Positions 12,668 through 59,468 of a stretch of 64,000 bases of DNA are shown here, in pieces (the first letter of the stretch is position 1; every line of letters begins with the position of its first letter). The position numbers and the translations under genes were made by a program. The DNA lies in NCBI GenBank assembly GCA_001643675.2, contig LSRY02000020.1, positions 930,001 through 994,000 of the forward strand. The letters run 5' to 3'. A model generated the notes under the pieces. The model made no database searches. It was not told the origin of the DNA and saw only the letters and a program-made list of their open reading frames with translations. The stretch is from Monocercomonoides exilis PA203. Lineage: Eukaryota > Protista > Preaxostyla.

Positions 12668-13067
12668 ATAATTTGTAAAATAATCATAAAAATATAATTT
12701 TTTAGCTTTGTTTATTAATTTTTCTTTTTTTCAGCAGAATTTCACTTTATTCTGAACAAATAAAATTTATCTGAAAAAATCTTAGTTAATTTGAAGTTAA
12801 TCTACTTCATTTTGGATAAAAACGAGATCATTTGAATTAAACAATATTATTCACATTTCATTAACAGCAAGGTCTGAACAAAATATCTTAAATAAAAACA
12901 AAATCAGACAGTTTTCTAACAAAAGAATATATATTTAAAAAATAAAAAAATTGAAAGTCTTATTATTGAATTTTTCGTTGGAAAAACTTCGCAAGAAGAA
13001 AAATTAGTATTTTGATCTGTCCATCACTTTTCTTTTGGGAAATTCCGGTAAGGACTGTTTGAAAAAA

Positions 13068-13937
13068 ATGAAGATTCGGAAGAGGATTGTGGCGGCGGTA
13101 TTGTGCGTTATAGCCAGCTTCTTTCTTATTAAGTCATATCTTCTTCCCCTTTACTGCACAAAGTGCCATCCCTGTCCCCCACCTACCCCCAAGTACCAAA
13201 AATGTGTAAAACAGCAAGCTCCTCGAGTGACTAGAGTTCTAGAGACAGCACAATATCTCTCTTTGACAAATAAAAGTCTTGCACGATTTGGAGACGGTGA
13301 AGTTGCACTTATTCTAAACCAAAAACTCCCATTCCAAGACCCAAATCCTGAACTTGGGAAAAGACTTGAGCAAGTATTTGTAGATGAGCTTCCTGACTTG
13401 CTAATTGGAATACCAGATGTATTTTCATGGTTTCCACCGATGAGTGAGCGAGATATTATGTTTTGGAATGGCTGGAATGAATTTCGGCAGTGGCTAATGG
13501 ATCACATCAGAATGGATCGCCAATATTTCGCGGCTCACATCACTAGCCCTTATGTATCCACTTCAGGAACATACTGCGAGTTACTCCCCCAAGTGTACTC
13601 TGCATTGCGAGATATATGGAGAGGAAAAGACGTTGTTATTGTTCGAGGAAATAACAGCCAAGTGTACAAATACGACATTTATGACACCGCACGCTCGCAA
13701 AAGGTCTTCTTCGCTCCATCAAAGCAAGTTTGGTCAGAATATGAAAACATTAAAAGCACTTTACTTAAAGAAGATCCGTCCAATCTATTTATTTTGGCAG
13801 TTGGCCCACTGTCAAAGGTTCTTGCTTATGATCTTGTAAAAGCTGGACGGCGTGCTCTGGACATGGGCCATTTAGCCAAGGATTATGACGCTTGGATGCA
13901 AAATTCCAAAGTAGATATTTCATTTTTCTTTGATTAA
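13068..13937 (+). CDS. GT-D fold (DUF1792-type) glycosyltransferase (copy 2)
   Basis: Protein identical to 8974-9843; ATG at 13068. Confidence 0.85.
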   Translation: MKIRKRIVAAVLCVIASFFLIKSYLLPLYCTKCHPCPPPTPKYQKCVKQQAPRVTRVLETAQYLSLTNKSLARFGDGEVALILNQKLPFQDPNPELGKRLEQVFVDELPDLLIGIPDVFSWFPPMSERDIMFWNGWNEFRQWLMDHIRMDRQYFAAHITSPYVSTSGTYCELLPQVYSALRDIWRGKDVVIVRGNNSQVYKYDIYDTARSQKVFFAPSKQVWSEYENIKSTLLKEDPSNLFILAVGPLSKVLAYDLVKAGRRALDMGHLAKDYDAWMQNSKVDISFFFD

Positions 13938-14001
13938 AACCTATATTATCCAAACATTTCATCATTTCCCATTATTCTTTTTTGATAATTTTTTGAGACA
14001 A

Positions 14002-14793
14002 ATGTTTCTGGCTTTTGTCCCTGTATTTTTCACGACACTTTTTGTTTTGTCAAATCAAATAATTCCAACCAAAGTTTACACATATACGAATGTGGAAATG
14101 CAGCCATCTATGGAGCATCTCCTTCAGAAAACAGCAAAAGAACTTTCACCTATTCCTGTCATCATGTTTAACAAACAATCCCTTCCATTCTATGCAGGAC
14201 AGCCAGAATTACCTCGTGATTTTGATTCACTTAATTTTACAATGCAGTCAATGGTATTGCAGCCACTTATTCTCGAAAAGTATGGTGGAGTTTGGATCGA
14301 CCAAAATGTGTTTGTGCGAAATAAGAAACTTGTTCAATCACTTGTAGACGAAGCAAATAAAGAAGGTGCTGATTGTTTGTGGACGAGTAGGATTACAGAA
14401 CAAGGAAACTATCCATTTAATGGAGTTGTTGTTGCACGCGCTCATTCTGCGTTGATGAAGTCCATCGCCGCAGAGCAACGCAATGAACCATTTCAAATGA
14501 CACAGAACAAAATGTTGCAATTCACATCTCAAAACGACAAAAAAGAAAAGATTATTGTAAAACCTATTGCGAACCGTTTTACACATCTGAAAATTGACTG
14601 CACAAACAGGGAGAACGCCTTTTCAGATTTAGAGAAACTCCGCAATAACGGAGCCTATGACTTAGTGCAAGTGGACTGCAAATTGAAGATGTTTTCGTTT
14701 CCTATTATTTTCATAGTTGTACTTCTACTTGCATTCTTTTTCAAATTTTATTCACTTATCCCGACTGCTCGGCACAAGAAATCTCTTTATTGA
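14002..14793 (+). CDS. GT32 / capsular-polysaccharide-synthesis-like protein (copy 2)
   Basis: Protein identical to 8118-8909; ATG at 14002. Confidence 0.7.
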   Translation: MFLAFVPVFFTTLFVLSNQIIPTKVYTYTNVEMQPSMEHLLQKTAKELSPIPVIMFNKQSLPFYAGQPELPRDFDSLNFTMQSMVLQPLILEKYGGVWIDQNVFVRNKKLVQSLVDEANKEGADCLWTSRITEQGNYPFNGVVVARAHSALMKSIAAEQRNEPFQMTQNKMLQFTSQNDKKEKIIVKPIANRFTHLKIDCTNRENAFSDLEKLRNNGAYDLVQVDCKLKMFSFPIIFIVVLLLAFFFKFYSLIPTARHKKSLY

Positions 14794-15038
14794 TCTGCAT
14801 TCTATTTATTCAATCATCTATATATATATGCTAAGCAGATTCAACACATACAGAATTTTATAATTTTTTATTATTTTTATCATTTGGTTTTTCGATAAAT
14901 GAATATTATTAGCATAAAAATTTTTTGAAAAATCCCGAGAGTTATTTTTTTTTTTTTTTTGCGGATATACGGCCTATTTTTTTTAAAATTGATGAGACGA
15001 ATGAAAAACGAATGATGCGAAAGATAAGTTGCATTTGT

Positions 15039-16981
15039 TCAATAAACGATGTAGCTCTCTTCTGCATCGTCATTCCACGGCGCATTTGCAGTCCACACGA
15101 CTATCTTTTCGCTTCTGAACGTCCTTCTGCAAACCGGGCAGCTCACACGCTTTTTGGCATCCTCCTCGTGCATCGCCTCGCCTGCATGCGGAAGATGCAC
15201 CCCGCTCCTCTGCTCCAGCCACTCTGCCAGGCAGTCTCGATGGAACACATGCACATCCCCAAAGAACCGCGCAAACTCGACTGTCACTGCATGCCGGTGG
15301 CGGGGCGGATGGGGGCGCCGGCGCTTGCGCATTGCCGAAGATGATGAAGATGAAGATGAAGAGGAAGAGGAAGAAGCAGAATCAGATGACGGATAGAAAG
15401 GAATGGAAGAGCGGGGAGATGGCTGGGTGGACGAAGAAACAGAAGCAGAAGGGACAGCCGAAGGGACAACCGAGGAAGATGCAGAGGGTGTGCTGGCTGA
15501 GGAAGGGTCGTCGCCAAAGGGCTTTTCCCAGCAGAAGCACACAAACTGCATCCCGTGGCGCACCTCGTCGTAGTCCCGCTGCGTGTCCATCTGCACTGCC
15601 TCCGTGTACTTCTGTGCAACCGCCAGCAGCCGCCGCAGCGTCGCCAGCAGAGGCGCCAGCGTCGGCACATCCTCTTTCCCTGTTTGTGTTCCTTCCGACG
15701 CCTGAGGCGGGTACGACGACCCAAACCGCCGCAGCAGCCGTGGCGGGTGCAGCGGGTGTGGAGGCTGCGTCTGGAACAGCAGCGCCGGCACCTCCGCCCC
15801 TCCTGCCCCTTCCAGCACATGCATCGCCACAAAGTTGTCCATCCTCAGCTCTGTCGCTTGCTCCCTTTCCCTCTCTCTTTCTCCCTCTGTCTCACCATCT
15901 GCTCCGTTCTCTGTGTTCTGGATCACATTCTGAATCGGCTGCAACCCTTCGTTCTCCTCTCCAAACACACCCTCTGCCTGCTGTTGATGTTCTGGCTGTG
16001 CTGCCATTGAAGCTGAACTTGTTGAATCTGTTGTGCCTTCCGACGTAGAAGTGGCAGAAGAGGAAGGAAGCAGACGAGCATTCAGGATGTCTTGCTCATA
16101 TGTCGGGTGCTGAGGAAGAGAAAGGGAGGGAGAGGGAAGCTGAGTGGGAAGATACGCAGGAGGCGGAGTCTCCCCAAACGAAGGATAAGGCGGAAACTGG
16201 GCACCACCAGCAGCAGAAACTGTGTTGTCTGTGGTTGAAGGCGAAATTGATGTTGATGATGAAGAGGATGAAGAGGATGAAGGTGTTGGGGTGTATGGTG
16301 GAGCAACAGCCGATGGGTGGAAAACAAGATCCATCTCATCCCCCACATTATCGTTCCCAACTCTTCCTTCATCATCATCATCATCATCACTTTCATCATC
16401 GTCACTTTGCCCAAACACATGGATGTTCTCATCGCTGACTGGATATCTGCTCTCTCCCCTTCCTCTCTTCTTCTCTCTTTCTCTCTTTGCCTGCCCTGCT
16501 CGCCTCAGCGCCTCGTTCTGTGCACGCAGCGAGTTCAGCGCAAGCGACGAGTCGAACTTCAGAACCGACGACGATGCTGACGACAGCACCGACCCAAACG
16601 CACTCACCATCTCCGACACAATCGTGTGCTCTGCCTCTTCAAACCGCCTGTCTCCTCCTGAAAAAAAAACAGGAAATGAAAATTTATTGATATTATTATT
16701 ATTATCAGCATCAGAACAATCACACCCTGCTTCGTCTTCTCTGCCCTCTCCAGCCGCTTTGCTGCGGCTGCTATCCCCATCAGCTCCTTCTCGCACTCCC
16801 GGAAGCTCTCCCGCAGCGACAGGTCCTCCGTCGACGCCTCCCACTCGCCCTCCCGCTGCTCCTTCCGATGCAGCGCCGCCGGGTAGAACGACGACAGCAG
16901 CATGCACAGCGACGTCACCGCAAACGACACCGTCCCTGCAGTCGGAAGGAAGAATAGTAGAGTTATATCTTTGATAATCAT
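15039..16981 (-). CDS. 5'-truncated duplicate of the RING-H2-like gene with an intact frame and a possible new ATG at 16981
   Basis: aaaATG at 16981 gives MIIKDITLLFFLPTAG...KTKQ; intron 16725-16658; the frame is then open through the RING to the stop at 15039 (ORF 15039-16907 has no frameshift). Confidence 0.55.
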
Positions 16982-17792
16982 TTTTAAAAGAACAATTTTT
17001 TGTGAGATTTTATTCAATGTGCAGAAAATCTCCTTCAACTCATTTGCTTTTTCATTAATCAAGATTAAAGAGTTAAAAACGAGCAATGTTTAATGAACTT
17101 TTTGTTAGATAGCTAAACATTCGATTTTGTTGGAAAAAATGTAGAATTGAGCCTTTTTCACACTAAAACATCATCATTCATACTCTGAATCAATAATTTT
17201 TATTTAAAAATAAACAGACGACACTTCAGCAAGATATCCATTACAACATCTTAGGTGAAAAATTTTTTGCTAGAATCTTTTTCATTTAGAAATAATATTC
17301 ATACCAGAGAAAGATGCTTGCATCGATATTCACACAAACAAAGCTGATTGAATGTTGCTCATTGAAGGTAAAGAAGACCACAAATGGTTCGATAGTTCAC
17401 AGTTTATATAATACGAAAATTTTGGAAGATTCAATGAAGAATGAGAATAGGAAGGAGAATATTGATAACTACGAAGAAGAGTCAAAACATTGAATAAGAA
17501 CAAATTGGACATTATCAGCTGATAAAGAACAAAAACGAATAAAAAACGAAACATTTTTTAAATTCAATAGAATAGGTTATTTTGATTGATTTGTAGTTCT
17601 TGCTGCATTAACATCACATCTTTGATGAAAATGCATCAAAATAATTACAATTTGTATTATTATTTTAATGATTTATCGTAAAATTAACCTATTTACCTTT
17701 TCATTCCATCAAGAATTAGTTTTCTTTTAATCAGAAATTTATTTTATAAATGGATCATTTTTTGTTTTATTTAAATAACAATTTCAAATTGT

Positions 17793-34980: not shown

Positions 34981-36382
34981 GGCATATTGTAAATATAGCG
35001 GAAATTGAATTTTAATAATTAATACTTAAAAATACAACGAAGTTAATCATTGGTTGTTTGTGAAAAATGTTTTCGTTGAAAAAATTCGTTTTTCATTCTC
35101 ATATTTTTTATTTATGAAATGTTTGTTTTTCACATGTTTATGGGTTTTGATCCTTGTTGTGATGCAATTTCCTGAAGCAACAGAGAGTAGAATTTCAATT
35201 GCTGATTTATCCAGTATATTTCATGATGCCGATAGAGCCTGGAAGTGGTTTTTTGAAAAAGCTTTTTCGAATAAACCGAAAAAATGCTCAAAATGTCGGA
35301 AAGATATGAAAATATACAGTGAGCGAATTAATTTTCGATATTTCCATTGTTCATCTTGCAGAATAAAACGATCTGTTTTGCACGGAACTGTGTTCAGCAA
35401 AAGCAAATTGCCCTTTCACAAAATTATGATTGTTATTTTATTCAGTTGGATTGGATTAGCTTCAAAACATATTAAAATGTTAACAGATGTGTCTTACTAC
35501 ACAATTGGTTATTGGAAAAGCGTCATTAGAGTGGTTTGCACAAGGATATGGAATAAATCTATGGAGAAAATTGGAGGGATTGGAAAAGTGGTGGAAATCG
35601 ACGAGGCAGTTTGGAGGAGGAGAAAATATGCGAGAGGAAGAAAAAAGGATCCATTGTGGATATTCGGCGCAGTGGAAAGAAAAGAAGGTGGAGGCGCAGG
35701 GAGGAATTTCGTAATGATAGTACCCAACCGTTCAAAAGAAACATTAATTCCGATCATAAAAAAATGGATTCTCCCAGGAACTACAATTTTCAGCGATGAA
35801 TGGAGAAGTTATTCTTGCCTCGGAGAATGTGGATATACACATTTAACTGTATGTCACAAGAGAAACTTTGTCGATCCAATAACAAAGGCGTGCACGAATA
35901 CTGTGGAAGGTCTCTGGAGTCATTTAAGGGGTTTTTTCCCTCGTCATGGAGTTAGAAAAACATTTATTGAGGATTGTTTATCAATGTGGCTTGTTCAACG
36001 CAATTTACATATTAATTTCGAAGATCTTTTTTCTGAATTAATCAAATTTCAGCCTGAAATACAACCCATTATAATTTCTGATCAAAAAGAAATCGAAGAA
36101 ATAGATGAAGAAGTTCCAGATGCAGATGACTTACTTGGCGCTGATGAGGAAAGTGAAACGGAGGATGATGAATTGCGTGCTGGGGATGGTTTGGATGCTT
36201 CATAATATGTCGATGATAAATTATTCACAACACACAATTTTTCCGAATCTTTTCTTGTTGTCATTTGATATTTCTTAATAATACATTATTATTCAAACAC
36301 ATATTAACACATAACACTTTTCAAACAGGTCAAACTTTTTAAAACACTGATTTTTGAAATTCCGCTATATTTATAATTTGCC
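34981..36382 (+). mobile_element. Intact Merlin (IS1016/IS1595-related) DNA transposon
   Basis: Left TIR ggcatattgtaaatatagcggaa (34981-35003); the right TIR reverse-complements to ggcaaattataaatatagcggaa (ending 36382). Perfect 8-bp TSD gaaatttt at 34973-34980 and 36383-36390. Confidence 0.95.
35162..36205 (+). CDS. Merlin/ISXO2-like DDE transposase (start could be 35114 or 35162)
   Basis: N-terminal CSKC...CSSC zinc finger; KIGGIGKVVEIDE, RRKYARGR, WIFGAVER, VPNRSKETLIPII, TIFSDEWRSY, HLTVCH..NFVDP, TNTVEGLW. Confidence 0.95.
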   Translation: MQFPEATESRISIADLSSIFHDADRAWKWFFEKAFSNKPKKCSKCRKDMKIYSERINFRYFHCSSCRIKRSVLHGTVFSKSKLPFHKIMIVILFSWIGLASKHIKMLTDVSYYTIGYWKSVIRVVCTRIWNKSMEKIGGIGKVVEIDEAVWRRRKYARGRKKDPLWIFGAVERKEGGGAGRNFVMIVPNRSKETLIPIIKKWILPGTTIFSDEWRSYSCLGECGYTHLTVCHKRNFVDPITKACTNTVEGLWSHLRGFFPRHGVRKTFIEDCLSMWLVQRNLHINFEDLFSELIKFQPEIQPIIISDQKEIEEIDEEVPDADDLLGADEESETEDDELRAGDGLDAS

Positions 36383-42100: not shown

Positions 42101-43136
42101 CTGTATGGTTATTCGAATATTCTTTCTAAAGCCTAAGGAAATTTTTAACTTAGAGGATGTCTGGTTGCAGATGCCGTATAAAGAAGCACTTATTCAAAGG
42201 AGTGAAAATTATAAAGGAGCAAACAAATGAATTTGAATGTACAGGAAAACTGTGGATTGATGAGAAAACATTGGATGTATTTTCTACAATTGATTGAGCA
42301 AATATATTCATGTGATTTATTTGTCGAACATCGTTTAATAAAAGCACATTTTTTTTAAGCGCAAATATTTTTTTTCCTTTAATTGTTGCTTTTTAAATTG
42401 GAATCTCTGCAATTCACTTTTGCCGAATTGAAATGACACAAAAGTGAATAAAAAGGAGAATTTGTTAAAATTTGTATTACTTTAAATAAAAATCGTTTTA
42501 AGCAACCAAACCTGGTTTCATTCAAAAGTTGTATCGGTGCAAGCTTCCGTTCTGCAGAAACACATTTTTTCCCACTTTCGTTCAATGAATATTTGTCAGG
42601 ATAAACTAATAATAAAGAAAATTCTCAGTGAAAACGTTAAATAAAATCTTAAACTTGAAATTTGTAAAGTGTTCAATATCCATCAATTCAAAAAATGCAT
42701 GTGCTCTTTATTCATTTTCCACGCATTGATGTTTGTTTTTAAAAGTTAAAATTGTCAACAATAAAAGATTTCGCAGATCATCCCATTTGTGGAACTTTGT
42801 TATCACAAAGTATAAACTATTTTTTGTTGAGTCATGGAACGAATCAAGTTTTCTCTTTTATCAAACTCGAGGAAAAGCGAAAGATGCAGAGATGTTTGGG
42901 AGTATCAAACAAACAAATCTGCAAATGATTGTGTGGAAATGCTGAAGTGCATGCTTTTCCAAATAAATACGGGTAAAAAAATATTTCCCCAGATTCAAAA
43001 AATATTTACGGTTTGTTTTTATTTTTTGTATTTGTTTTTGTGAAAAATCTAATTAAAATGACATCATGAAAAGAACAAAATCAATATTTCATGTTACGAC
43101 TGGCTTCTGCTAATAATCAAGAAGAAAATCAACATA

Positions 43137-44146
43137 GGGTCAACTTTTTAATGGGACTTTTTCCCTTATTGGCACTTTTTTTGTTTTTGACTGCCAACTT
43201 TCAACAAACGTTGATTGGCTTTCAGTACTTCAAAAAACCTTTTTTACAAGTTTAACACAATTTATTTACAGTTGGTTTTTTAATTTTTGCTTATTACACA
43301 TTGAGAAATTACGTTTTTTTTGTTAAATTTGAAAGGACTTTTACCAGCCAACTAGGCAACGTCCAAGAAATTGGATACATGTTTTGAATAGCAAATACTA
43401 TTATCTAACTACTTTTAAATTCTTTTTTTTCATAAACACTTTTTTCTTGTTTTTTTCACATTTCATTTTTTTAACAACATTCTAACATAAAACCGATTAT
43501 TTCTTTGTTAATATAATGAAATGATAAAAATAAAAATTTGATATGAAAAACAAATAGTCTAATAATAAAGAATTGGAAAAATGAAACATTATTTTTTTCT
43601 ATTTAACTAAAACGGACAAATGGCGCTTTCTTAAAATAATTGATGATCAAGTTTTTGCAAAAAAGTTAAGTTCTTGACAAATAGAAAAAAATAATGTTTC
43701 ATTTTTCCAATTCTTTATTATTAGACTATTTGTTTTTCATATCAAATTTTTATTTTTATCATTTCATTATATTAACAAAGAAATAATCGGTTTTATGTTA
43801 GAATGTTGTTAAAAAAATGAAATGTGAAAAAAACAAGAAAAAAGTGTTTATGAAAAAAAAGAATTTAAAAGTAGTTAGATAATAGTATTTGCTATTCAAA
43901 ACATGTATCCAATTTCTTGGACGTTGCCTAGTTGGCTGGTAAAAGTCCTTTCAAATTTAACAAAAAAAACGTAATTTCTCAATGTGTAATAAGCAAAAAT
44001 TAAAAAACCAACTGTAAATAAATTGTGTTAAACTTGTAAAAAAGGTTTTTTGAAGTACTGAAAGCCAATCAACGTTTGTTGAAAGTTGGCAGTCAAAAAC
44101 AAAAAAAGTGCCAATAAGGGAAAAAGTCCCATTAAAAAGTTGACCC
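43137..44146. mobile_element. Foldback/MITE-like element: 468-bp apparently perfect TIRs (43137-43604, 43679-44146), 74-bp spacer, TA TSD
   Basis: TA|gggtcaactttttaatgggac ... gtcccattaaaaagttgaccc|TA. Removing the element and one TA restores N-Q-H-T-K-V-T-L, which aligns with N-K-H-A-K-V-T-L in the paralog at ~62550. Confidence 0.92.
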
Positions 44147-45019
44147 TACAAAAGTCACTTTATAGAAATGTATTTTCCAAGAATACAGCCTAACGCAGCT
44201 GATTGATTTAGGCTTTTCATGCTCCCATGGAAGTTATTATCATACAAAGAAAAATAGCTCATTTGCTTCGTTAAAAATTAAAGCTCTGAAAAATCCAGCT
44301 CTTCCACCATCTGAACAACGTTTGTTTTCATTATTTTTTATTCTTGTTAAAAAGAAATTTTTGATTTGAATACGAATATCATTCAAGTATATCAAAATAG
44401 AATTGAATTTTGAAAATGAGAGAATTTTCAATGAGTTTTTTTAATGAAAATTCGACCGAATCATCGGAATGCATCCGAAACTTCTCCCGTTAAAGCCGTA
44501 GTTTGTTTTCACATTAATTTTTTCTGATTTCAGTGTATATCAATTTTATCATTCAGATTCTGAACCAGAAATAGATGATGATTTTCAGATTATCAACTGC
44601 AGTAACGAAATGCAAGAGGATGTTGATCCTCTTTATCATTATTTCAAAGAGAATGATATCAGAAGCGACAGTTTGCATACTGCTGGAGAACAGAACGTTT
44701 CTGGAAATGATAGTTACAGCCAAATGGACATTGATGAAGAAATTTCCCTTTTGGATGTTCAGGAAATAGCTGACCATTCTTTTTCTTTTGAACTTGAAAT
44801 AATACTGAACAATTCTAAAATGATTACTGAAGACAATTTCGAAAATGATGCGGAGCTTGAGAAAATGGCAGATTCTCATTGAATGGAAGAAGATAGTCAC
44901 ATATTTGAACGGAAAAGTCAGAATTTTCAATTTTCTCATTGTTCTGCTTCAGATGTTTGTGCTCAAATGAAACATTCAAGGAATGAAACAGGTCAGCAAA
45001 TGGAATCAGATGTTTATTC

Positions 45020-45845
45020 TCCTTTGCCAAATATGGGGAATACATGTAATTTGTCTTCAATGATCCAAGTGTTTCGATCAATTTGCATTCAATTATGTGA
45101 ATTTAGCCTAAGGAAAGGAAGAATATCAAAATTCTTGGTTAGCTTGAACAAAATAATTCAAAGCAACAATTTGAGACTGTGATCGATAACAACAGAAAAA
45201 GGCAACCGTGGTCCTCATCTTTCGTAAGAAATTGGGTAAAAAGACATGGACTTTAAAATGGTGAACAACAGGAATGCTATGAGACATTTTCAAATTTGTT
45301 TAGCGATCTTTCATCTACAACTCCAATGATAGCAAAAAAAATGTCAGCTAAAATCTGCTATCCAAGAAAGTGCAACGAATGCGGTAGGTTGGAATTTGGA
45401 ATGATTGAATCGACCCCATTAATTCGACTTCAGATGAGAGATGTCATTTCCGAGTTAAACAAATCATTCAGGACAAGCAAAACAAATACCAACAACAGAG
45501 AAGCTTTCTGCTTCCAATGTCAGAAAATAACAAATCAATTTTCGTCGATGAAAATAAATCTATTCCCTCACATTTTAACATTCACTTCAGGATCTGATAT
45601 TGAAAACAAAAAGAGAATATTTAATATTCCCTCCGCAATCTCGTTTTCTGAATCAAAAGGAACGATGATTTCTCATCCTTCTAATACAGAGAATTCCCAC
45701 AATTACAGTTTGATGGCCTAGCTTTTTCATCAAGAATCAAAAGAAAGCGGTCATTTTTGTTCAATGTGAAGAAGCAGATGCCCATCGCCAAAATGTTCAT
45801 CATCCAAAGATAGTTGGTATATTTGCATCGACGGAGAAATATCCT
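45020..45845 (+). pseudogene. Ubiquitin-specific protease (peptidase C19/USP) domain embedded in transposase copy 1
   Basis: Cys box PLPNMGNTCNLSSMIQVF; EQQECYETF (QQD-box equivalent); CNEC and CFQC zinc knuckles; LFPHILTF; His box YSLMA*LFHQESKESGHF; WYICIDGEI. Confidence 0.75.
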
Positions 45846-47869
45846 TCATAAATAATGAAATAACAACAGAAACAAACTCTAACATAAACAATGGTTCAAT
45901 TCCGTTTATGAATGTTGACTCTCAGGAGAATCGTGGATGAATTCCTGTTTCCGATATTGCTTCACCAAATTTGTTTCAATTGGGACTATCACATCAAGGA
46001 AGTTCTTTTTCTAATAATATTTCATTAGTGTATCAGAGGAAAACAAATGCACGTTCTGTTAACATTAATTGTGATGGTTTATTCCAAGATCCTTCTTATT
46101 CACATCATCAAAAACCAACAATTCCACATCATTCCACTTCACCTTCAACAGCATCAGATGAAATAGCTCATATTCATTCTTCATCAGAAAAACGCCCTAA
46201 AAAATCAGCCTGATCTAACTTCGAAAACGGAGTCTCTCCGAAATTCATTTCATTAAGAAATGACACTTAAACACATTCAACTTCAAACAAAATCATTTCA
46301 GATCTTAACAATCATAAGAACTCAATTCGCAAAAAATCAAATCAGTTTCAAATAAATAATCATTTCCCAGAAAATGCTCTCTCAACAGCGGATTTCAATA
46401 ACAAGCAATCACAAGTTTCAGATATTGTTTTGTCAACACAATTTGGCAAAACAAAAAACGCATCAACCATTTGTTGCAATCCTCATTCAAATTAGATCGT
46501 TCGGCAAAATTTGCAACATCCACATGACAATAGTTTAAATAATTCTTTCACCCACAATTTGGCAGACGAAACTCATTATCCAATGAATAAACAACAAGTT
46601 CGCGTTGTCAATACAACAAAATCGCATTTGCATGAAAAGCTAATTGAAACAACAAATGTCAAAATGTCGAAAAGAAATTTCTACAAAAAGACAAAACACT
46701 TCAAAAGGTCAACTCGGCGGACTGATTTGTGCGACTTATGTGAGAAGTGTCATCGATTGAAGAAGAGAGAGGATTATTTGAAATCTCAATCACAAACATT
46801 GAATGATCAGGAACAGCAAACAATGAGACTTATCGAAAATCATCGCTTTCTTGCATCAAAACAACGTGAGCATTTCCATCAAATCAAAAAAAAAACATTT
46901 CATTAACGGAGGCATTGGTTTTATTCGACTTTAAAGAGAATTGGACGCTTCCTATTTGCAAAAATCAAATAAGTCGAGACTATTATGAAAAACAGGAAAT
47001 ATCTCATTTTTGCGTTATTGTTTTCATTGTCTACAAAAAAGGAGACAAGGAAACACATTTTCAACTTTTTCTCAAACGCCCTATCTCACGACTGCCGTTT
47101 CACCATTGAATGTTTGAAGCAAGTTTTGGAAAATGAAATCGTCAAAAACAAGCAAACTCTTCTTTTTGTGTGTGATACCGCGCCACACTTTCAGAATTCC
47201 CAGCTTATGCATTTTCTCCTTTCTGACAACTCTTCTCCCGTCAAAGGCAAACGAACAACTCTTTCCTTTTTCTATGAAAAACATGGAAAAAGTGAATGAG
47301 ATGGAGAATTCGGGAATCTGACAAACTGTGTAAAATAGAACTTGTCCAATGAAACTTCAATCAGAAAAATTGATGAACTTATGATATTTCTAGAAAACAA
47401 TTCAGATAACACGAACAAATTCCTATTTGATAACCAGGATTTCAATCAAAAGGCCATTCGTCATTTACTAAAGTTTTGTTCGCTTTATCTAATATTTAAT
47501 TTACATATTTTTTATATTTTTTTACATAGATACACTTCTGGAAACAAAATTCGATGGAAAAGGATCGTTTTGAAAGAAATGAAGACCTATTTATTCTATG
47601 AAAAAAGAGGAAATCAAATCTACAGATCTGTGTGCTCTCCAGAAAATTCGTATGGAAAATGGAAGATAAACTTTCAAGAAAAAAGCATCAGAGATGAAAG
47701 GTCAATGAAGTCATCAAAACAATACTCTCACAAAGAAAATTTATTTGAAATAGGAAATATAACTTTGTAACTTTTGAACGATAGAAAAATGTTGGATCCA
47801 ACTTGTTTTGTTAGTTCTGTTCAATTTAATGAGTAATTTTGTTTATTGTTGGATGTTATTATTGAGATG

Positions 47870-48086
47870 AATGAAGTTTTTTTTTAATACGTCTGCTGCT
47901 CAAGCCATTAAGTGTTTGCTTCCAACAAATACTCATTGGTACCCTAGTTTTCGCTCAAGAGCGAAACAAATGTGGATAGGCTGATTCCGTCCTGGGACTG
48001 TGACGTAACCGGTCCAGCACAGTCCCTTGAAGGCTTTGGGTCCAGAATCAGCCTCCCAGGGCAGATAGTCAAAAAAACAATTCGTT
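47870..48086 (+). ncRNA. Candidate conserved structured RNA downstream of transposase copy 1
   Basis: Stems aggctgattc (47978-87)/gaatcagcct (48045-54) and gggactgtg (47994-48002)/cacagtccc (48018-26); closing gtctgc (47891-96)/gcagat (48061-66). Covaries with the copy at 59289-59468. Confidence 0.55.
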
Positions 48087-51000
48087 TTATTGATTACATT
48101 GGTTTATTTCACTGTTTTTGCAATTTAACATATTTCAAATGTCGACATTTGAAAATTTTTAATTTTTTTATCGAGCGACATTGAATTTTAAATAAGTTTT
48201 CTGAATAAAGAAAAATTTTCAAAATCAGATCCAGAGATACGCAATTTTTTTTGTGATTATTTTATAATCTGAGAACAACAATGTTTTAGCAAATGAAGTT
48301 TATTCTTTCTTTGCACATCAAGAACTACTGAATATTGGAAAATTGTTTTTTCAAACGTGAATGATTATGCACTGAATTGAATAAATTGAGAAATCAAACG
48401 CAATAAATGATTTTCATCATTCATGAATAAGATTTAAATACCAATAGTTTATTTTCATTTTGATCTCTTCAATTTTTATTAGTTGACATATAATCAAAAA
48501 TGACTTGGTATCAGTTTCTTTGGAACAACTTTTTGAAATTTTCACTTTATTCAAAAGTGGAACGTTTGTGGAGCGTTTTTGAAGAATGAAAAAACTCAAA
48601 TAAAGATTGTTTGACCGGAAAATTATTCAAAGTGTGTATTTATCTCATTGGATGATGAACATATTTTTTTAATAACAAACTTTTTAAACTCTGTTTTCAT
48701 ATTTTGAATGAATATTAAACAAATAAAGAACAAAAATTTCCACAGGAATAAAAATGATCAAATGTAATCCAAAAGTGTTAAAAAGCGTTTGAAGGAAGAG
48801 AAAAAGAAAAGTGATATTTCTTTGATAGATTTTGATAAGAAAGAAAGGCCGAATCAGATTTGATAATTGACAACTGCCCACACTTATAATTGCTTAAAAC
48901 GGGAAACAAGAATCATCATTTTTGAAAATGAAGTGCAAATCACTTTATAAAATATAAGTTTTCATTGACATTCTCAAATGAACAAAACAAATTGCCAGAA
49001 AGTCCGTTGAAATGTGGAAATAAGGAGCGTTTTCACACTTAAAACCTTCAGAATATCCTGTCATATCCAAACGTTCAATCGAAACCTTGACTTTCATCTG
49101 TCGATAATCACATGCTTCTTTCAATCGTATTTCCTTCCTTTTCTCTCTTTCTGATTATATTCATTCTTCTGCAACATTGAACGTTGGATTGTTGGTTTTT
49201 CATGCAATAAACACAAGTTTTGACTTGACGTAGCATCAATCAGCCCCTTTAGTAAAAAGGATACGCTTTTCCATCAGATACAGCTGATTGAATCGAGGAA
49301 AATGCGATATGTTTTTGTTTTTAACATTTTATCATTAGAAATGCATTGTTTTATTATTCGATGAACATGAAACAAAACAGGAAAATGAAATGCATTGTTT
49401 CTGCATATCAATATTTTATTCTTATTAAACAATTTCTTCTTTTTCTTTGATAAATTTATATTATCATATTCTTCTCCATTTCCTTCTTCATCCACCTCCC
49501 TCTTCTGATGAAGCAGAGTATCAAATGTCACATCTTCAACTGCACAATAGCACCATAGGTGTTAATGTTTTTTTTACAAACATTTTGCATTCTCTTTGTC
49601 TGATTGCAAGGAGAGGCGCACACAGAATTTAGCAAGATGTGAATAAGGAAATGCTGATAGAGAAAATGAAAGGAAATATAACAAAAGAGTGAAAAAAAGA
49701 GAATGATAAAATGAATTGAAGAGAAAGCGATAAAAGTTCGAGAGATTGAATCTTTAGACAATAAAGAAGATGTTAATGTTGCGATCATGTGAAGGCGAAA
49801 AGGAAGATGGCAGAATGAGTGATGACAATTAGATAATCGAAGTACAGTATTTGGAGCTGTCAGTGGAAGAGGTGGAAGATGAGAAGCCACAGATTTGATG
49901 TGACAGTTGGGGGATGATGAAGAAGGACAGTTGGAGGCTGATACGTAGCAGATAAATGTGGAGAAGGAGATTGAGACGAACCAGAAGCACTCTGCATTGT
50001 AGTTAATGTTGATGCACCATGTCCCTTTTCTAGCCAAGGCAACACAAACTTTGTCTTTGATTCGTCTCTATTCGACATAAGTTCTGGTAATAATATTCTT
50101 GGAGGTGCATTGCAGCGAGGAGTTGACGAAATCTTTTACGTAATTCATCAGGGAGAAGAGAAGAATGATGATCAAAGAGCACAGACCAGAGATTCAACTG
50201 AGAGAGGAGGAAGGGAAGGCGAAGAAAGCAGAATATACACTTTTTTCAATCAGCCCTAATCCAGAAAATTTAGCAACAAACTCGTCTCATGAATTTGCAG
50301 ATTGTAAAAGCAACCCACAAGACACAAAGGGTTACAATGCTTTCCCTTCAGTATTGCAATTAGCAACTTCATCCATAACATATTTCACAACTGAGTTACC
50401 AAGGCGAACTCTTTTCTTCAAAGTGAAAGTTTCAGCCACGTCAATAGATCGAACATGTCAACTTTCAAAGAAATATTTTTGATTTTCCACGGGATGACGC
50501 ATGAAATGAAGCATTGACTGATTCCATCCACAGAGAAGGTGGAGAAATAGATGGTGACATTGATAGAAGACATATTAAAAATGGCCAGGAAGCGAAAAAA
50601 TTCAGGAAAAAGATGATGAAGAAGAAAAAGAATGTGGAACTTGAGTCGGAGTGGAGGAAGCTGAATATTGGAAAAAAAAAGAAGCGGGAGGACGACAGAT
50701 TAATCGAGGCAAAAATAGAAACGGAGGGTAATCATCATAGAGAAAGAAAGGATTCTTATGAAGCAAAAATCGAAAAACAGAATGTTTAAGAAAAACCCGC
50801 AGCTTCCATTGTTTGAAAGCTTTCCACCCAGCCATGCTTCTTCTGTGTTTCCAAAATCGTCATATCCTTCTTTATCTTTGAATTACACTTCTTCTTATGA
50901 TGCTTCAGATTTGAAGAAACAAATGTGCAAGCATCTTTAAAAGTTTGCGGACATGTTGATTGAATTTGCTGTCTCTATGTATTTATATTCATTGCTGCGT

Positions 51001-53234
51001 TTGAGAGGGGAAGTGTGAAGGCGTTATAACAGAAATGTGAAATATGCATGATTGATTTAAGTCACGTTTATTTTTGAACTGTTATCGATTTCCTTACTTT
51101 TCAATTTTGGAAATGAAAACTGAGTTATCAATATTTCTTTTTCAATTTCCTCATTTTTTTGCTTTCATGAAAGCACTTTCATATCTGTGAATTGCATTCA
51201 ATTTGTGTTTAATATTTGTTCAAACTCCTGCATTTCTTCCTTTCACCTCTCTGCACTTGCAATTATCAAATCTCATCCCTGTTCATATTATCACCACAGT
51301 TCAACCAAAACTCGTCGAACAATATCGCTTCAACCTCTCTGCCATGCACGATCCAATGCAGCCTCTTCAAAATTCTCCTGTGCCTCAAAATTATCAGAAC
51401 TTCAACATCCTCTTTTTTGTCTTTTGCAACCACTCCGCATTTACGTTCCAATAAAAGCTGAACATGCAGAAAAAACTGCCTCCTTTGGAGATAATGCGCA
51501 AGTGCGATAAAAGAAGGGCTTGGAAAGAGACAGGTTAAAGAAATGAAAAAAACAAAGGAGGTTTGGGATGTATAGAGAGTAATTGTGCACGAAATATCAC
51601 AGTTATTGATACTTTGGAAGTGTGCAGATTTCATTTTGCATAGCTACTGAGAACAGAAAGAAAGCAAAAGCAGAAAAGGCAGAGGAAGAGAAAAAGAGGA
51701 TAAAGATAAGATAGATGAGAAAGATGAGAAAGAAGCGGAGGCAATAGAATGCAATGAGGAAAAGAAAGGGAAGAAAAATAAAAGAATGAGATTAACGAAA
51801 AAGAAAAATTAGCGTAAATTGAAGAACCTTATTATTTCGGTTGATACAACAAATTTGTTTCAGAACGCATCTTTTTGTGTAAAAAAAAAATAGATTTCAA
51901 TTAAGTTAAAAAACAATTCACGTTTCCAATTTTATCTGTTTCATTTGTATTCTTTAACGATGAAACACCGATAGATAATTAATGAAGAAAAAAATATTAT
52001 CTAACCTTTTTAATGGAGAAAGAAAAATTTCTTCAGTGAATTGAATTATCAGTTTTTGAGAAAAGAAAAAAAGCAAAAGAAAAAAATAAGGAATTGAATA
52101 AATCTTCATTCCAACAAAAATAATATGATAAATGTGAGGAAAGAACGATTTCGTGTAAATGAGGCTGTTTTTCAAGCAAGTTTCAACATAATAATAAACG
52201 GCATTTGAAATATTTTTGGAATGAACAAAGATGATGTTTTGTTTTGCGTATATGTAAACATATTTATCATATAAAAAACAATTGATAAATTATTAATAAT
52301 TAAAATTTCTTATCAAACAAACAGATAACAAAAGCTCTTGATTGAAGTTCATGAACTTTTATTCCAAACAGGTCTTCTCGTAAATGTTGGTTTTTTCCTG
52401 AAAAAGCAAATGGGGCATAATTTTTAATTTTGTGAAAAAAACATCGATTTGTTCCATACACTAACTGCTTTCATTAATTGATGCGTATGTCATTTTAATT
52501 GATTCAAAATGTTGAGCATGCTTCTATTATATTTTTTTTGATCATCAGTTGATAAAAGAATTCAATATTTAAGGATATAACTAAAATAAACTTTCAAAGA
52601 AAATGAAAAGTGTCAATTTGTTCATGCAGTGACACGAATATGCAGAAAAGACATGTTTTACCATCGTCTGGGAAGCAATTGGAGATTTGACTTTATTTGT
52701 TTGCAATTTAAGGAAACTTCATATTTTTGGAAATGATAAATTAATTGAATATTGAGATTTGATATTTTCATTGAATGAACCAGTCTCAACCTCTGTCTTT
52801 TTTATTGAATCCATTTTCCACGTATTTTCTTTTGTTGTTTCTGTATCTTATTTCTGAGAATGTTTTTGTTAATTTTGCATGCATTTTCCTTTTCCGAACT
52901 CACCCCAACAGTTGCTTCAAGTCAACTTGCTCTTTTGTTTTGCTTATATCCAACAAGCAAAACAAACTGTTCAATATCTTTTTATTTGTTCAACAGATAA
53001 AAGCTATCAAACATTGACTTTCAAATAAGAAATAAATAGAAACAAAAAAGTGAAGAGTTCAATTTTTATATCTTCTTTAAAGTATTTGTCAATTCATTTA
53101 ATTGCAATTAAACAGTGACAAAAATCGAAAAATCTATCAAATGCTTGAAAATTTTTGAATTGATATAAAATCGAAGCATTTAAAGTCTAATTTACTGTTT
53201 GTAATTTTCATCTTTTCTGCATTCTTAAATGTGC

Positions 53235-53278
<44 letters not shown>

Positions 53279-53479
53279 AATCTTTATCATTTTTCAAACA
53301 AAAACATACATCATTTTCATTCTGAATTGCAAAATCGCATTCTCATTTTTCAATTTATAAGTTTTTCATCTTTCATCCACTTAAACAGTTTTTTCTTCAC
53401 TGGCTTTTTATTAATCTTCTTCCATTTGATAATCCTCCTCTTTTTGCAGCATCGTCTAGTGTTCATAAAGCAATGCAAA

Positions 53480-54580
53480 TAATCCTTAATGTTTTTTATC
53501 TTCTAAAGTTGATTGATGAAATCTTCTATATGAATTGAGAGATATGGCTTTAACATTAAACAAATCATCGACCATGAAAATTCTGTTTCCTTCTTCATCA
53601 ATTAGAAATGAATAAATGCAATGAACACAAATTGCTCGGCAATTTTCTTCAGGTGCTTGAATAAAAGAAAGATGAAACTTTTCCGTCAAACAAGCTTTTT
53701 ATTCGGTATTTCGCAAATATTTAAGATAAACTTTCATATTTTCGTCCATTCTATCAAATATTGACTTCTATCATATTTTCTTTACTCATTTCATTTTTCT
53801 TCGTCAGTCAATGCGTTTCATTTAATCTTCCAATAAGTTCACTTGAATTTTTGCAAAGGATAATTCATTTGATAGTATTCCTTCCAAACAAAATTTGTGA
53901 AATATTCGATTAATCAAAAACTGACAAGCAATCAAAATAAGCAAGTCTGTTCAGATTTCTGTGCTCTTAATGATGTGAGATTGCATCAGAGTTTTCATTT
54001 CCAAAAGTTCTCGTTCAGTTTTCTTTTATTGAAAAAGGAGAATGCAATTTATAAAGTTAAAAATGAAATCGAAATACACCTTCATCTTATTCAAAGTGAC
54101 TCAAATTTGCTAAAGCTTTTTCAACTTCTTCAAAAACTTCATCGTTTTTATTTTGCTCAATGCAACTTTAACGAAACAAAGAACACTGCCTGAATGTTTT
54201 TTCTGAAACACCATCGTCGAGCGAAAGGAAACATTAACCACCACCAACGTGCTGTTTTAATTTTTTCATATTCATTTTCCAATCTTCATCAATTATCATC
54301 TTTCAAATTCATCTTCTCAATAGTTATTCATCAAAAGAATAATATAAAAATCTTTATTCATTTTTGAAAGATCCAACTCTCTTCATCAACAATTTTGAAT
54401 TTTTCAAATTCGTTTTCTCCTTATCAATCATTTTATCAATTTCATGAAACAATTTTGATGATAAAAAATATAAAAACTTTTCCTTGTTCATTTGATAAAA
54501 ATATCCATCAATCTCCTCTTTTTTCTGTTTCTGTTCATTTTCATCGAAAGATTCCAGTAAATCAAATATCACCTTAACAA
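53480..54580 (-). pseudogene. Degraded member of an expanded lineage-specific helical-repeat gene family
   Basis: Fragments EIDKMIDKEKTNLKNSKLLMKRVG and a CVLC.VKVAL-like segment. Similar degraded sequence lies at 63150-63560 on the + strand; many stops. Confidence 0.4.
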
Positions 54581-56627
54581 ATATTCAAACACTGACATTC
54601 GAACTTTCAGTTAAACAGTGAAAATATTCAAACTTATAAACATTTCTGTTGATAAAATCTCATAAATTCGATCATTAGCTTTGCAATCAATAATCATTTG
54701 CATATTACCAGCCATGTCAAATAACAAAATTTTGTGAATTATCTTTCGTTAACAAAAAGGCGCAATAAATTCAAATGTCTTTGATTAGAATGCAAAAGAA
54801 AATGGATATGCAACAACTCATTATTGTTAAATGCTTCACAATCATTATTGCAAAAGAATGAGTACAGTAACAACTTGGATTGAATGTTAAAAATCAGATA
54901 AAGAATTTTCGAGTTTCGTTTTGATCTCACCAACAATTTGTTTGAGGATGAAAGTCTTTTTTTCCTTTTTCGAAAAAGAATAAGATCCATCAACAGAAAT
55001 GTTGTTTGAACGATAAGAAAAGAAATGGGGTGAATGATTTTGAAAACGGAAGTTTTTTTTCCTTCAAGAAAAAAGATGGAGATTGAAAACCAGAACATTT
55101 CATAATCACATGATAATTATTGATTGTCGATAATGGAATGTTTATTGAGAATGTGTTTTCAGATGCTTCAGAAGTTTATGGATAATAAAATAAATGTTCT
55201 TTTGAGAATAAATTTTGATTGACAAAAGAAATGAACTTGAGCATGGTCAACATACTTGCAGAGTTACAGAAAATCAATACTCAATGCTCTGATCGTTAAA
55301 TAACTTGTATTATGAAGATATGATTAATAATTCGGAAAAAACTGCAAAGGCCACATTCAACAGAAAAGAAGGAGATTCAGATGTTTCGTGAAGCTCTCAC
55401 TTCAGATAATATTTGCATGCTTCTTTCAAACATATCAAGATTTTTGGTTTTCTCAACAATTTTAATTTCAATAGATTAAAAAGTCAACATTGAATATTGT
55501 GAAAGCCACCTCTCTTCTGGAACTCTTATGAAAAGTTCACTTTGATATTTTTTGACAGCTGAAAACGAAGCAAAAACAATATATGAAGCTTCTGTATAAA
55601 AATAATAAAGAGATTCTCAAATAGTATTATGATACTATTTCTGAAGATTTATTTGGACGGGCTCAATCTGACATTGAAAATCCTCAATCATGTTCATATG
55701 CATTGCAAGCATCATTCGAGCACAAAGACAAATGAGTATAAATTGTTCGAGTTCTGGATTACTTGAATCATTTCTTTCTTCTTTAATCAATGTTGCAAAA
55801 AAAGATAGCACTTTTTTTTTACAGTCGTTCATCGAAGCAACTCAATAAGTGGTCTGTGTGTTTGATTATCTCTGATAAACCTTTTTTCATTATCAATTTT
55901 TCTTTATTCCTTGGTTAATTTTTTTCAGAAAAAAAGTATTGAATGATATCTGTCATGATTTCAACAGACTTATCCAGCACTAATTACCATTCAAATCTGA
56001 TATCCATGATGGAACAATGAAATCAACACATTTTTTTATATGTTTGCACATTTATACCGAACAGACAATTGTTCAAGATACAAATCATCAATCTATTGAA
56101 ACAAAGACAATATTTTTTCTTGAAGATTCTATCTGCAATTGATGTGCGTGCAAATTTTTAAAGCTTATAGTTAATTTCTCATTTTTTTCGATTGAAGATC
56201 TTTTATTAGAATTGTTTTTTGTTGTTTGCAACTACGCATTCGTGAGTGATTGATAGTTCAAAAGACAGCGATGAGAAAAGAAGAAAAGTTCGGAGATTCC
56301 GACATCGAAAGGAATATATTTCAGTGATTTATTGTGATAATAAAAATCGGATTGTTGTTGAATATTGTTTATATTAATATCTTTCAAAAGTTGCGTTGAA
56401 TGGGGTTTTTCATCAAAGTTGATAACATAACAATCACTGTTTTATTCAGATAAAAGTTCTTCTTTTCAGTCTGCAACATGTGAGTTTCGTTATTCAGAGT
56501 ATTTCAAACCCAGTCATTCTTTGCATGTCATTTGTTTTCCATTGTATTCACTCTCGCAAAAATAAAAGAATATTTCAAGAAAATACATTAGATTATTATT
56601 TCATTAGAAATATACCATTATAGATAC

Positions 56628-59004
56628 ATGATAAACACTAATAAAAAAAAAGTGTATTCCGACAGGCCTCGCTCAACAAAAAGCAGGCATGCCGCACAGC
56701 TGTCAAAAGCTTTGAACGACATGGATTCGGAGGACCCGGAGGGATGCTTAATTCACTTCATCCATCATAGCAAACCTGGTAAATCCTTTCGGGAAGTAAT
56801 TGAAAGCAATTACAAAAGTGTGAACATTAATTAAAATTGTTGAATGATAATAATAATATAACTTCTTTGTTTATCTGGATTTATTAATGTTTCTAATGTT
56901 GCTGAACAGTAAAAATAAACAAACTTCTGGAAAATCTTTCGCAGCTACTTTCTGTTCTGAATAGGCATGAAAGGGTTTTGGTTCTCGGTTGTGTGTCAAA
57001 CATTTTCCCCATGGGAAAACTGGAAAAGAGTGATTGGAATGTGACAAAAAGCGAATTCTATTACTCCCAAAAAGCTTGGAAAGATTTTTTAGAGGAAAAA
57101 ACAGTTTCTTCAAACGAACAAAAAAAGGATAATTGCTCCAATTTGAAATGTTTGTCTTTTCTATTTTTTCGTTAACGATAGTTTTCTTGTATTTTCTGTC
57201 ACCAAATAAAGCAAGCCAATTTAATATGGCAGAATCCTGGATGTTGTGCCACAGTTCTTGTAGCTGTGAAAACGGAAGAAAACGAAAAAAATGTTTGCTC
57301 ATTTGCATTTTTCTGAACAATTTGGAATTTTATCAATATCGTTTTTTATATTCACTGCCTTTGATCAAAAACTCTTTTGTATTTACTATTTCAGCTGTGA
57401 AAAAAAACCCTCGGCACAACGATCTGAACGAATCCCAGTCTTGCATTATTACAAATGTGTGTGAAAATGATGCGAACTCAAAAAATCAACATGCAGTTGA
57501 TGTTGATCGAAAAGAAGTCGTCAAAACTTCCTCTCGATCTGAATTTGAAAAGAAAAAAGAAAAGAAAATTATAAAAGATAAAAAAAAAGAAACAGTTTTC
57601 TCTCCGACAGAGAAAAGACTGATAGAAAAAACAAAAAAGAATTTATATTCTGAAATGACGAATGAATTGGAAATCAAAATGGCTTATTCTACGTTTTGTG
57701 AAAAAACAAAGAATTTTAAAAAAGCCAAGAAAAGGACAGATCTTTGTGATATTTGTGAGAGAGGTAATTTTTTAGAGAGGAAAGAAAAAGAATTAATGAA
57801 AAAGAATAAGAAATTAAATGATGAAGAAAAAGAAGAAATAGAATTAATTGAAAACCATAGAAAAATGGCAAAATGCCAGCGTGATTATTTTTATCACGTG
57901 AAAAATAACATGAAACAAAATGAAGTTTCCATCATTATGGACTTCAAAGAGAATTGGGCTTTGCCCATTACAAGAAACGAAACTTGTAAAAATTTTTATG
58001 AAAAAAAACAAATTTCACACTTGTGTTTTGTTGTTTTTAAAGTTAACAAATTTTATAAACTTGAGAAATTTTGTTTTAATTTCTTTTCAGAAATTTTATC
58101 TCATGATTTTAGATTTGTGTTGGAATCATTAAAACAATTATAGAAATTTGATATTTTCAAAGATGTTTCTTCTTTTCAGTTCTTTTGTGATAATGGTCCC
58201 CATTATAGGGACTCACACATATTACACTTTTTATTATCTAATTCGTCTCCAATTTTTTCTAATAAAATTTGTTCTTTGTCATTTTTCGCAGAGCACCACG
58301 GGAAAAGTGAGTGCGATAGTGAATTTGGTCATTTAACTCGTTTAATTAATAATAATTTAAATGATAATGTTTTAATTACTATTGATGATTTAATTTGTTT
58401 TTTCAATTCTAAATGCAATTCTGAATATTGTGCCAATAATTTTATTAATTTTAATATTGATAATATTTCTTTTTCTGATAGTGATACACAGATAACAATA
58501 AATGAACAAGATAATACAACAATTTCTACTGATTTGTCTTTTAATACCAACGGACAAAGAGAAAATGAAACGAAACATATATTTTTAAAGTGTGTTTAAA
58601 TTTTTTTTTAATTTGATCAACATAATTTTTTCTTATAAACTAAAATCTTTATTTTAATATTAAATTTGATATATCTTAATAAATCTGATAGACACGAAAT
58701 AGAAGCAGACAATATCTGGGGTGAATTAATCATCTCTGGAATGAAGAAATTTTTGTTTTTCACAAAGAAAAATAGAAAAATATTGTCTTCTCCTCTCAGC
58801 AGTATTGATTCTCAGAATTTTGTAGAAATAAATTATAGAGAAAGAAAAAGAAAAACCGAAAAGGAAAGGAAAGTTTATTTGGGTAATGGAAAGACCGAAA
58901 ATTCGTTTAATATTGAAATGGATAAAAGTATTGGAAAAAGCGTGAAGAAAACAATAAAGGATAGAATGAATTATTTGAAAGCTTTTAATTATGATTCAAC
59001 ATAA
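56628..59004 (+). pseudogene. DDD-type (Sola2-like) transposase gene, copy 2, intron-containing, mildly disrupted, without USP
   Basis: AYSTF...KKAKKRTDLCDICE...HRKMAKCQR, IIMDFKENWALP, FYEKKQISHL, FFSEILSHD, in-frame TAG at 58141, FFCDNGPHYRDS, FFAEHHGKSECDSEFG. Collinear with 46600-47770. Confidence 0.75.
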
Positions 59005-59288
59005 TTAAATAACACTTTTTTTTCTGATGACTCTTTAATAGGTGAAGATTCAAACTGCTCCATTGAAAGCGAATCAGGTATGTTACGTATGCAAGAAATA
59101 AACATTTCTCCAAAGAATTGCTCTATTCATTTTCAAACCATAAATAATTATTCACATTTCAATTCTTTTAATTTTGATAGCTCTGAAGGTCAGAATAATT
59201 CTTCAAATTTGTCTGATTTTTTTATTAACTCAAATTCATCAATTGACAGCAACTCCACAATGGAGGAAGTTTTCTAAATATTTATAAC

Positions 59289-59468
59289 TTTTTTATAAAG
59301 TCCATCTTTTGAAGTCTTGCTTATCCAATGATAACTGTTTTTTTCAGTTTGAGGACTAAACTGAATCCTTCCTATTTTTATTCAAATTTTTTTTGGATAA
59401 GAATTTGCAGGCCTTGGGTCCAGATTCAGTTTCCCAGGAGACTTTCAAAAAATGGACTGTATAAAAAA
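59289..59468 (+). ncRNA. Candidate conserved structured RNA downstream of transposase copy 2
   Basis: Stems aaactgaatc (59358-67)/gattcagttt (59423-32) and atttttattc (59374-83)/ggataagaat (59395-404, two G-U); ~29-bp closing stem 59289-59317/59439-59468. Confidence 0.55.

Follow-up and report, generated by a model that had tools for sequence, protein, structure and literature searches.

The stretch of Monocercomonoides exilis PA203 DNA analysed here (64,000 nucleotides, nt; hereafter the window) carries two decayed genes for a DDD transposase that we take to be Sola2-like, and each gene is followed by a copy of the same folded RNA motif. The motif is a real, structured RNA of a eukaryotic DNA-transposon clade, without a catalogued family, and literature searches returned no description of it. 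It appears to be a compact cis-acting fold within the transposase mRNA's 3' untranslated region (UTR), and the reading that we favour, tentatively and with a probability of roughly 0.4, is that it is an undescribed small self-cleaving ribozyme built with parts like those of the hepatitis delta virus (HDV) ribozyme. The copies outside M. exilis, a revised core, circular permutations and an element bounded by terminal inverted repeats (TIRs) are new here.

Both window copies lie on the plus strand and belong to a subtype that we call type O. Copy A, as delimited by folding, pairing tables and sequence, spans 47891-48066 from one side of outer stem X to the other, with extra weak outer pairing out to about 47867-48085. 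It comprises a conserved GCUYA junction at 47898-47902, which is kept in 5/5 type-O copies and is the candidate catalytic-C strand; the 5' strand of stem P1 at 47978-47987; an optional hairpin P2 at 47991-48026, which most copies of the second subtype, type F, lack; the core stem P3 with its loop at 48032-48043; the 3' strand of P1, from 48044 or 48045 to 48054; and the pseudoknot partner CCCAGG at 48055-48060. Copy B, with its outer stems, spans 59299-59458 and begins 22 nt past the last stop codon. Its GCUYA junction (59319-59323) is followed by stem Y with an inner hairpin (to 59357), the 5' strand of P1 (59358-59367), P3 with its loop (59410-59421), the 3' strand of P1 (59422 or 59423 to 59432) and CCCAGG (59433-59438). 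The candidate cleavage sites would fall between 47977 and 47978 in copy A and between 59357 and 59358 in copy B. Re-reading of the window sequence confirmed what the original prediction had said of these two copies: they sit behind the transposase genes, both have the inner hairpin, the outer stems and the GCUYA word, and exactly three pairs differ between their 10-bp P1 stems, all of them compensatory. The junction lengths, which had been given as identical, differ by 1 nt at one place (GGA-T in A and GGA-CT in B). Folding z-scores against dinucleotide shuffles are -3.6 for region A and -4.9 for region B, and the best match between the two regions outside the coding sequence is the motif core itself (80% over 50 nt, E 6e-6). 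A survey of sequencing runs found region A in four DNA runs and in no RNA run.

The proposed tie between the RNA and the transposase family was borne out in relatives. By reading 3' of transposase homologs, in loci picked by closeness and with some copies spotted by eye, 16 curated copies were collected in 15 loci, all on the sense strand and shortly past the stop codon of a Sola2-like DDD transposase. Their hosts are M. exilis (the window), Smittium fungi and metagenome contigs, and the 14 copies beyond the window lie in L001, L003 (Smittium culicis), L004, L007, L008, L009, L031, L032, L064 (two copies), L065 (Smittium megazygosporum), L066, L067 and L068. The copies in L065 and L066 are divergent, L010 holds a truncated copy besides the 14, and the copy in L008 is a compact one of 85 nt (L008:2170-2254). 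The distance from stop codon to motif is 2-356 nt where measured, and many copies start 2-22 nt past the stop. Type O comprises A, B, L067, L031 and L032, whose transposases form a clade with an SH-like approximate likelihood ratio test (SH-aLRT) support of 98, and the type-F transposase clade has a support of 87, with 11 loci carrying the motif; in a smaller second transposase tree type O does not resolve. The sole locus of the type-F clade with enough flanking sequence and no clear copy is L014, which has at most a very divergent copy that was not counted. No copy was found in about 20 more distant loci with enough flank or behind the transposase of L082 (P0060), and scans of viral and GTDB collections for exact matches to the pattern gave 12 hits, none of them with P1 and P3.

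Relatives without the standard motif, namely L038, L037, L014 and L022 (about 5570-5630), showed other structured islands past the stop codon. The island in L038 (about 600-770), whose transposase is sister to the type-F clade in the second tree, is a fold capable of a pseudoknot; that in L037 (about 2480-2620) consists of tandem short hairpins; and that in L014 (1040-1150) is possibly the divergent motif copy. L068 has, behind its motif, a second transposase copy that is decayed and stands in tail-to-tail orientation on the minus strand (1770-2560), and L064 6513-6773 is probably a similar tail-to-tail copy; read-through of this arrangement would yield long double-stranded RNA.

The core of the motif consists of two stems, P1 of 10-11 bp and P3 of 2-3 bp, together with a pseudoknot in which the loop letters N-G-G pair with C-C-N' directly behind P1. 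Its circular order runs from the P1 5' strand, which starts with a purine, through a linker of 5-6 nt or the optional hairpin P2, to P3 (R-G ... C-Y) with its N-G-G loop, the P1 3' strand (mostly 11-12 nt), C-C-C-N', the optional stem X, a G-C-(U)-N-A strand, stem Y and a short linker back to P1. In 15/16 copies 23-24 nt separate P3 from the end of P1, a fixed spacing of the kind expected of a tertiary fold. The first P1 pair is purine:pyrimidine in 15/16 copies (14 A-U and one G-C), and no copy has a G at position -1. In 14/16 copies the pseudoknot or stem X is followed by a C...A strand, which reads GCUYA in all five of type O and UGCMA in 9/11 of type F. A structural descriptor, built from these same copies, matches 13/16 of the real regions and 1% of shuffled 400-nt regions.

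Covariation in P1 across the 16 copies supports the earlier proposal that structure is under selection. When the top seven P1 pairs are scored, 6.6/7 pair with cognate partners as against 3.6 with swapped ones (0/20000 permutations), and when seven type-F copies are aligned by machine, two-sided changes appear at 13 pairs, as against 6.3 in shuffles (0/500) and 1-3 in slid controls; these shuffle counts are not probabilities. P1 has seven G-U against two A-C mismatches on the sense strand, an excess that favours this strand for the RNA, as had been predicted. The predicted pseudoknot between the loop and CCC also held. Its two G-C pairs are broken in a single cell of the pairing table, and the variable pair N:N' occurs in four forms: U-A in 12 of the copies, U-G in another two, A-U in L065 and G-C in L066. 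The number of independent changes behind these forms is small, and two of the changes belong to the divergent copies. The first pair of P3 is G-C, A-U or G-U, with a change from G-C to A-U in L008. The second pseudoknot of the original prediction, GGA:TCC, did not hold as a family feature, being possible in only 3/16 copies, namely A, B and L067, the last of which shows GGC:GCC; in copy B the GGA can alternatively form the 3' arm of stem Y, which covaries in all five type-O copies. GG:CC around the loop, by contrast, is fully paired in 15/16 copies. Type O may switch between these pairings. In type F, a 5' YYAWAG word can pair with the loop, with no clear compensation.

The motif is found in three circularly permuted forms. 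The outermost stem is X in type O, Y in type F and P2 in the inner copy of the nested pair in L064, where two cores lie in one rod (fold z -5.4). Crosswise pairing of the P1 strands in this rod reaches 11/11 for the inner copy, as against 10/11 in tandem, and the two long linkers pair mutually, so that the inner copy is best described as opened at P2. P2 itself is absent from most copies, including that of the complete element L008, with only 5-6 nt in its place. Three permutations of one core suggest that function depends on the core and not on the point at which the chain enters it. A permutable core with dispensable peripheral stems is typical of small ribozymes such as hammerhead and twister, and a small core, fixed spacing, conserved unpaired letters and dispensable outer stems together give the look of a small self-cleaving ribozyme.

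In HDV-like ribozymes the first P1 pair is purine:pyrimidine and position -1 is not G, P1 measures about 7 bp, and in P1.1 a C in the loop pairs with a G after P1. The fold proposed here would resemble a rewired core of this type, made of P1, P3 with its loop and a short pseudoknot stacked under P1, and in which the optional stem X would take the place of P4, the C-N-(N)-A strand that of J4/2 and stem Y that of P2. The motif shares several features with HDV-like ribozymes, the minimal and theta forms included (PMC10879173; PMC4035085): P1 is closed by a purine:pyrimidine pair; P3, of 2-3 bp, adjoins the 3' strand of P1; a short pseudoknot from the loop lies immediately after P1; a stem resembling P4 may be present; in most copies a C...A strand, the candidate catalytic one, precedes the next stem; and there is an association with mobile elements. 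Minimal HDV-like ribozymes lack P4, and in them the catalytic C comes first in J4/2 with a conserved A next (PMC10879173). By this comparison, the motif would cleave itself just 5' of P1, mostly at U|A, and the cut would end the transposase transcript well inside the right TIR. A likely use of ending the mRNA inside the element would be either to lower transposase output or to avoid TIR-containing read-through RNA that triggers silencing.

Several points weigh against this reading. P1 is 10-11 bp long, the letters of the pseudoknot are reversed (GG in the loop and CC after P1), although some variation of P1.1 has been noted among HDV-like ribozymes (PMC4035085), and the HDV order P1, P2, P3, P1', P1.1', P4, J4/2, P2' is not that of the motif, where stem Y after the C...A strand pairs upstream of P1, so that there is no nested P1/P2 pseudoknot. 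The C...A strand is absent in L065 and L066 and differs in length between types O and F, as does the linker before P1 differ between them. The alignment behind the covariation counts is hand-curated, its sequences are related and the controls ignore relatedness. Cleavage within the 3' UTR would as a rule deprive the mRNA of its poly(A) tail, an outcome that does not necessarily suit a transposon. Finally, no Rfam covariance model (hammerhead, twister, twister-sister, pistol, hatchet, HDV, xrRNA, SECIS and others) matched the motif with an E of 10 or less, either in the window or in 13 loci, in keeping with the earlier failure to match it to a known family by eye. With its longer P1, reversed pseudoknot letters and differently wired P2-like stem, the motif is not a member of the HDV family and at most works alike; its place 3' of a DNA-transposase gene also differs from that of the HDV-like ribozymes at retrotransposon 5' ends.

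Some specific candidates were considered and set aside. An HDV fold on the minus strand has the wrong strand order, and the balance of G-U pairs speaks for the plus strand, although L008 by itself folds a little better on the minus. A selenocysteine insertion sequence (SECIS) was rejected because gene A carries other lesions besides its UGA and no in-frame UGA occurs in intact relatives. The pistol ribozyme shares with the motif a short GG/CC hairpin, a G-rich loop that pairs with a downstream CCC strand and the same circular order of stems. It differs in junction lengths and in the conserved catalytic letters, and the Rfam pistol model gave no match.

Among the alternatives to self-cleavage, an unlikely one is that the motif blocks nucleases, like the exoribonuclease-resistant RNAs (xrRNAs) of viruses, or stabilises the transcript, for example by protecting the mRNA 3' end as the element for nuclear expression (ENE) does in some plant and fungal transposons. 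ENE and double-domain ENE (dENE) elements in such transcripts are conserved structures near the 3' end of the transposase mRNA that contain a U-rich internal loop, whereas the motif has no U-rich internal loop and its core is pseudoknotted and permutable. The motif is like the class 1 xrRNAs of Flaviviridae (PMC8374639) in that both lie in a 3' UTR and show the order P1, P2, P3 followed by pairing of the P3 loop with the strand just behind P1 (Pk2). The strand closed by the pseudoknot, counted without a 3D model, is 16-18 nt in the common copies, near the 15-16 nt of the class 1 ring around the 5' end (PMC8374639), and about 21 nt in L031 and L032. The 5' pseudoknot of the viral RNAs (Pk1), in which 5' nucleotides pair with the junction ahead of the P1 3' strand, is however not conserved, an upstream GG making it possible in only 3/16 copies, and in the permuted inner copy of L064 the 5' strand of P1 comes after the core, which leaves no 5' entry. 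P1 is also longer than in the viral RNAs, P2 is dispensable and missing from most copies, outer stems enclose the fold, the host is a cellular transposon and not a virus, and the Rfam scan gave no match for this class either.

It is also rather unlikely that the motif serves as a binding site for a protein, either the transposase on its own mRNA or a host factor, in feedback, cis preference or localisation. The motif subtype tracks the transposase tree at the supports given above, unpaired letters are conserved, and the motif adjoins the stop codon, where the nascent protein is released. Co-inheritance alone would account for the match to the tree, however, the core is common to transposases of only about 35% identity, and no extra RNA-binding domain was recognised in the enzyme. 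A signal for translation termination, for read-through or for transcript 3'-end formation by the host machinery is improbable. It would suit the many copies that begin within 22 nt of the stop, but the distances of 54, 103 and 356 nt in L067, L004 and L003 do not fit it, no conserved downstream open reading frame (ORF) was seen, and permutation would be hard to tolerate. Quite improbable, too, is that the fold leaves the transcript as a discrete small RNA, for instance by cutting itself free, and that the DDD transposase binds it as a cofactor that it needs; were this true, the enzyme would be the first ribonucleoprotein among eukaryotic cut-and-paste transposases.

The remaining alternatives are affected by the structure of the whole element, which is preserved in the metagenome contig L008. 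This element of 2.9 kb has 62-nt perfect, internally palindromic TIRs at both contig ends and a single ORF of 573 codons, and the motif begins 5 nt past the stop codon, some 590 nt inward from the right TIR. Since a complete element has its TIRs far from the motif, the family consists of ordinary TIR transposons and the motif is not an element end. A TIR search around the decayed copies A and B found none and a palindrome scan, perhaps too strict, returned nothing, but the suggestion of a system without TIRs is not supported for the family. The original prediction had also raised a guide or scaffold RNA, a role for which OMEGA, bridge and seek RNAs would be the models. The close linkage of a structured RNA to the enzyme of a mobile element, and a variable hairpin in some copies, would invite this comparison, but it is very improbable: the hairpin is reduced to 5-6 nt in most copies, L008 included, the motif lies so far inside the element that no flanking guide is read, the enzyme has a plain integrase fold and TIRs, and comparison of the motif with the rest of its own locus gave only isolated 12-nt matches, none informative. 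A structure of the DNA itself, be it an element end, a single-stranded hairpin or an unrelated miniature inverted-repeat transposable element (MITE), was suggested by the lack of TIRs around the window copies and is already largely refuted by the internal position of the motif in L008, the G-U excess on the sense strand, the same placement in 15 loci with no TIR or target-site duplication of its own, and the absence of any structured copy among the exact-pattern matches in viral and bacterial collections.

Members of the family have a palindromic word in common, terminal or subterminal, whose centre is CCATATGG or a variant of it; it lies at L008 1-64 and 2841-2904, L065 1572-1623 and 5177-5203, L066 near 1531 and 5112, and L005 near 22. 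In the window, the word CCCATGG(R) occurs only twice, at 44224 and 57008, some hundreds of nt upstream of gene A and of gene B; it resembles the palindrome centre of the L008 TIR and these are possible left-end remnants. Many transposase ORFs end in a short (P)-M-E/D word just before the stop and the motif (L001, L007, L009, L064, L068 and window B).

The two transposase genes of the window are, as first described, diverged members of one family (37% identity over 250 amino acids), and both are pseudogenes on the plus strand. Gene A (46511-47836) has frameshifts and stops and a probable intron at 47473-47529, recognised by GT..AG at the same place as in B, so that the two appear by eye to share the intron position. 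Gene B (57580-59277, its start not defined) has internal stops at 58141-58143 and 59002-59004 and a probable intron at 58590-58691. Its end had been placed at 59.0 kb, but the gene most likely runs, by its sequence, through the stop at 59002-59004 to the stop at 59275-59277. Protein searches, which used separate gene pieces and not a joined spliced model, gave four homologs with pieces of B and 68 with a profile, including proteins of Smittium and Dentiscutata; an exhaustive search returned 331 homolog clusters at E 1e-30, and a search of viral contigs found no homolog. The acidic triad D68, D151 and D192 is invariant in the alignment of relatives (A3), and the predicted model of a relative (predicted local distance difference test score, pLDDT, 82) matches a retroviral integrase with Z 13.9 and Mos1 with Z 12.6; these are the triad and the integrase/RNase H fold of a DDE/D cut-and-paste transposase. 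No Pfam family was assigned to it. The Sola2 label is tentative and goes by sequence motifs; P0067, presumably Sola2-like by the same motifs, matched at E 3e-8, and P0129 has a weak DUF7869 match. With Sola superfamily DNA transposons (listed in PMC4455052), Sola2-like ones among them, the family shares a DDD triad in an integrase/RNase H fold, a preceding Cys-rich motif, TIRs and one ORF. It differs from Sola transposons as described in the papers searched in its RNA element, its palindromic TIRs and, in some members, a fusion to a USP domain.

Upstream of transposase A lies such a segment, a decayed sequence like USP (C19 deubiquitinase), at 44990-45860 on the plus strand. Its translations, read by eye, show a Cys-box-like stretch near 45016-45070 and a His-box-like stretch near 45700-45850, and the one piece scanned had no Pfam match. 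The relative P0200 (L081) is a transposase-UCH fusion in which the USP domain is C-terminal, whereas in window copy A it is N-terminal to the catalytic core; no RNA motif was found behind L081, and a protein search for long USP fusions returned no proteins of M. exilis PA203. Just upstream of this USP-transposase A region, a 99% perfect inverted repeat of 479 nt with a 56-nt spacer occupies 43135-44148 and is foldback- or MITE-like. Elsewhere in the window, a Merlin/IS1595-type transposase ORF lies at 35054-36205 (Pfam PF12762, E 1e-21), and a gene block of about 4 kb is present as an inverted duplicate with identical proteins at about 5800-9850 and 13035-17090, either a recent duplication or an assembly artefact.

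It is not obvious why a DNA transposon would need a tertiary RNA fold that is conserved, and yet a protist, fungi and metagenome contigs all retain this one. To our knowledge, only about a dozen classes of small self-cleaving ribozyme have been described, and those known to us in mobile elements belong to retrotransposons, which move via RNA. If the motif blocks Xrn1, it would be a cellular xrRNA, something described as still sought (PMC8374639, 2021). If it instead cleaves, as we tentatively favour, it would represent a new ribozyme architecture and would point to self-restraint at the RNA level, or to escape from silencing, in DNA transposons.

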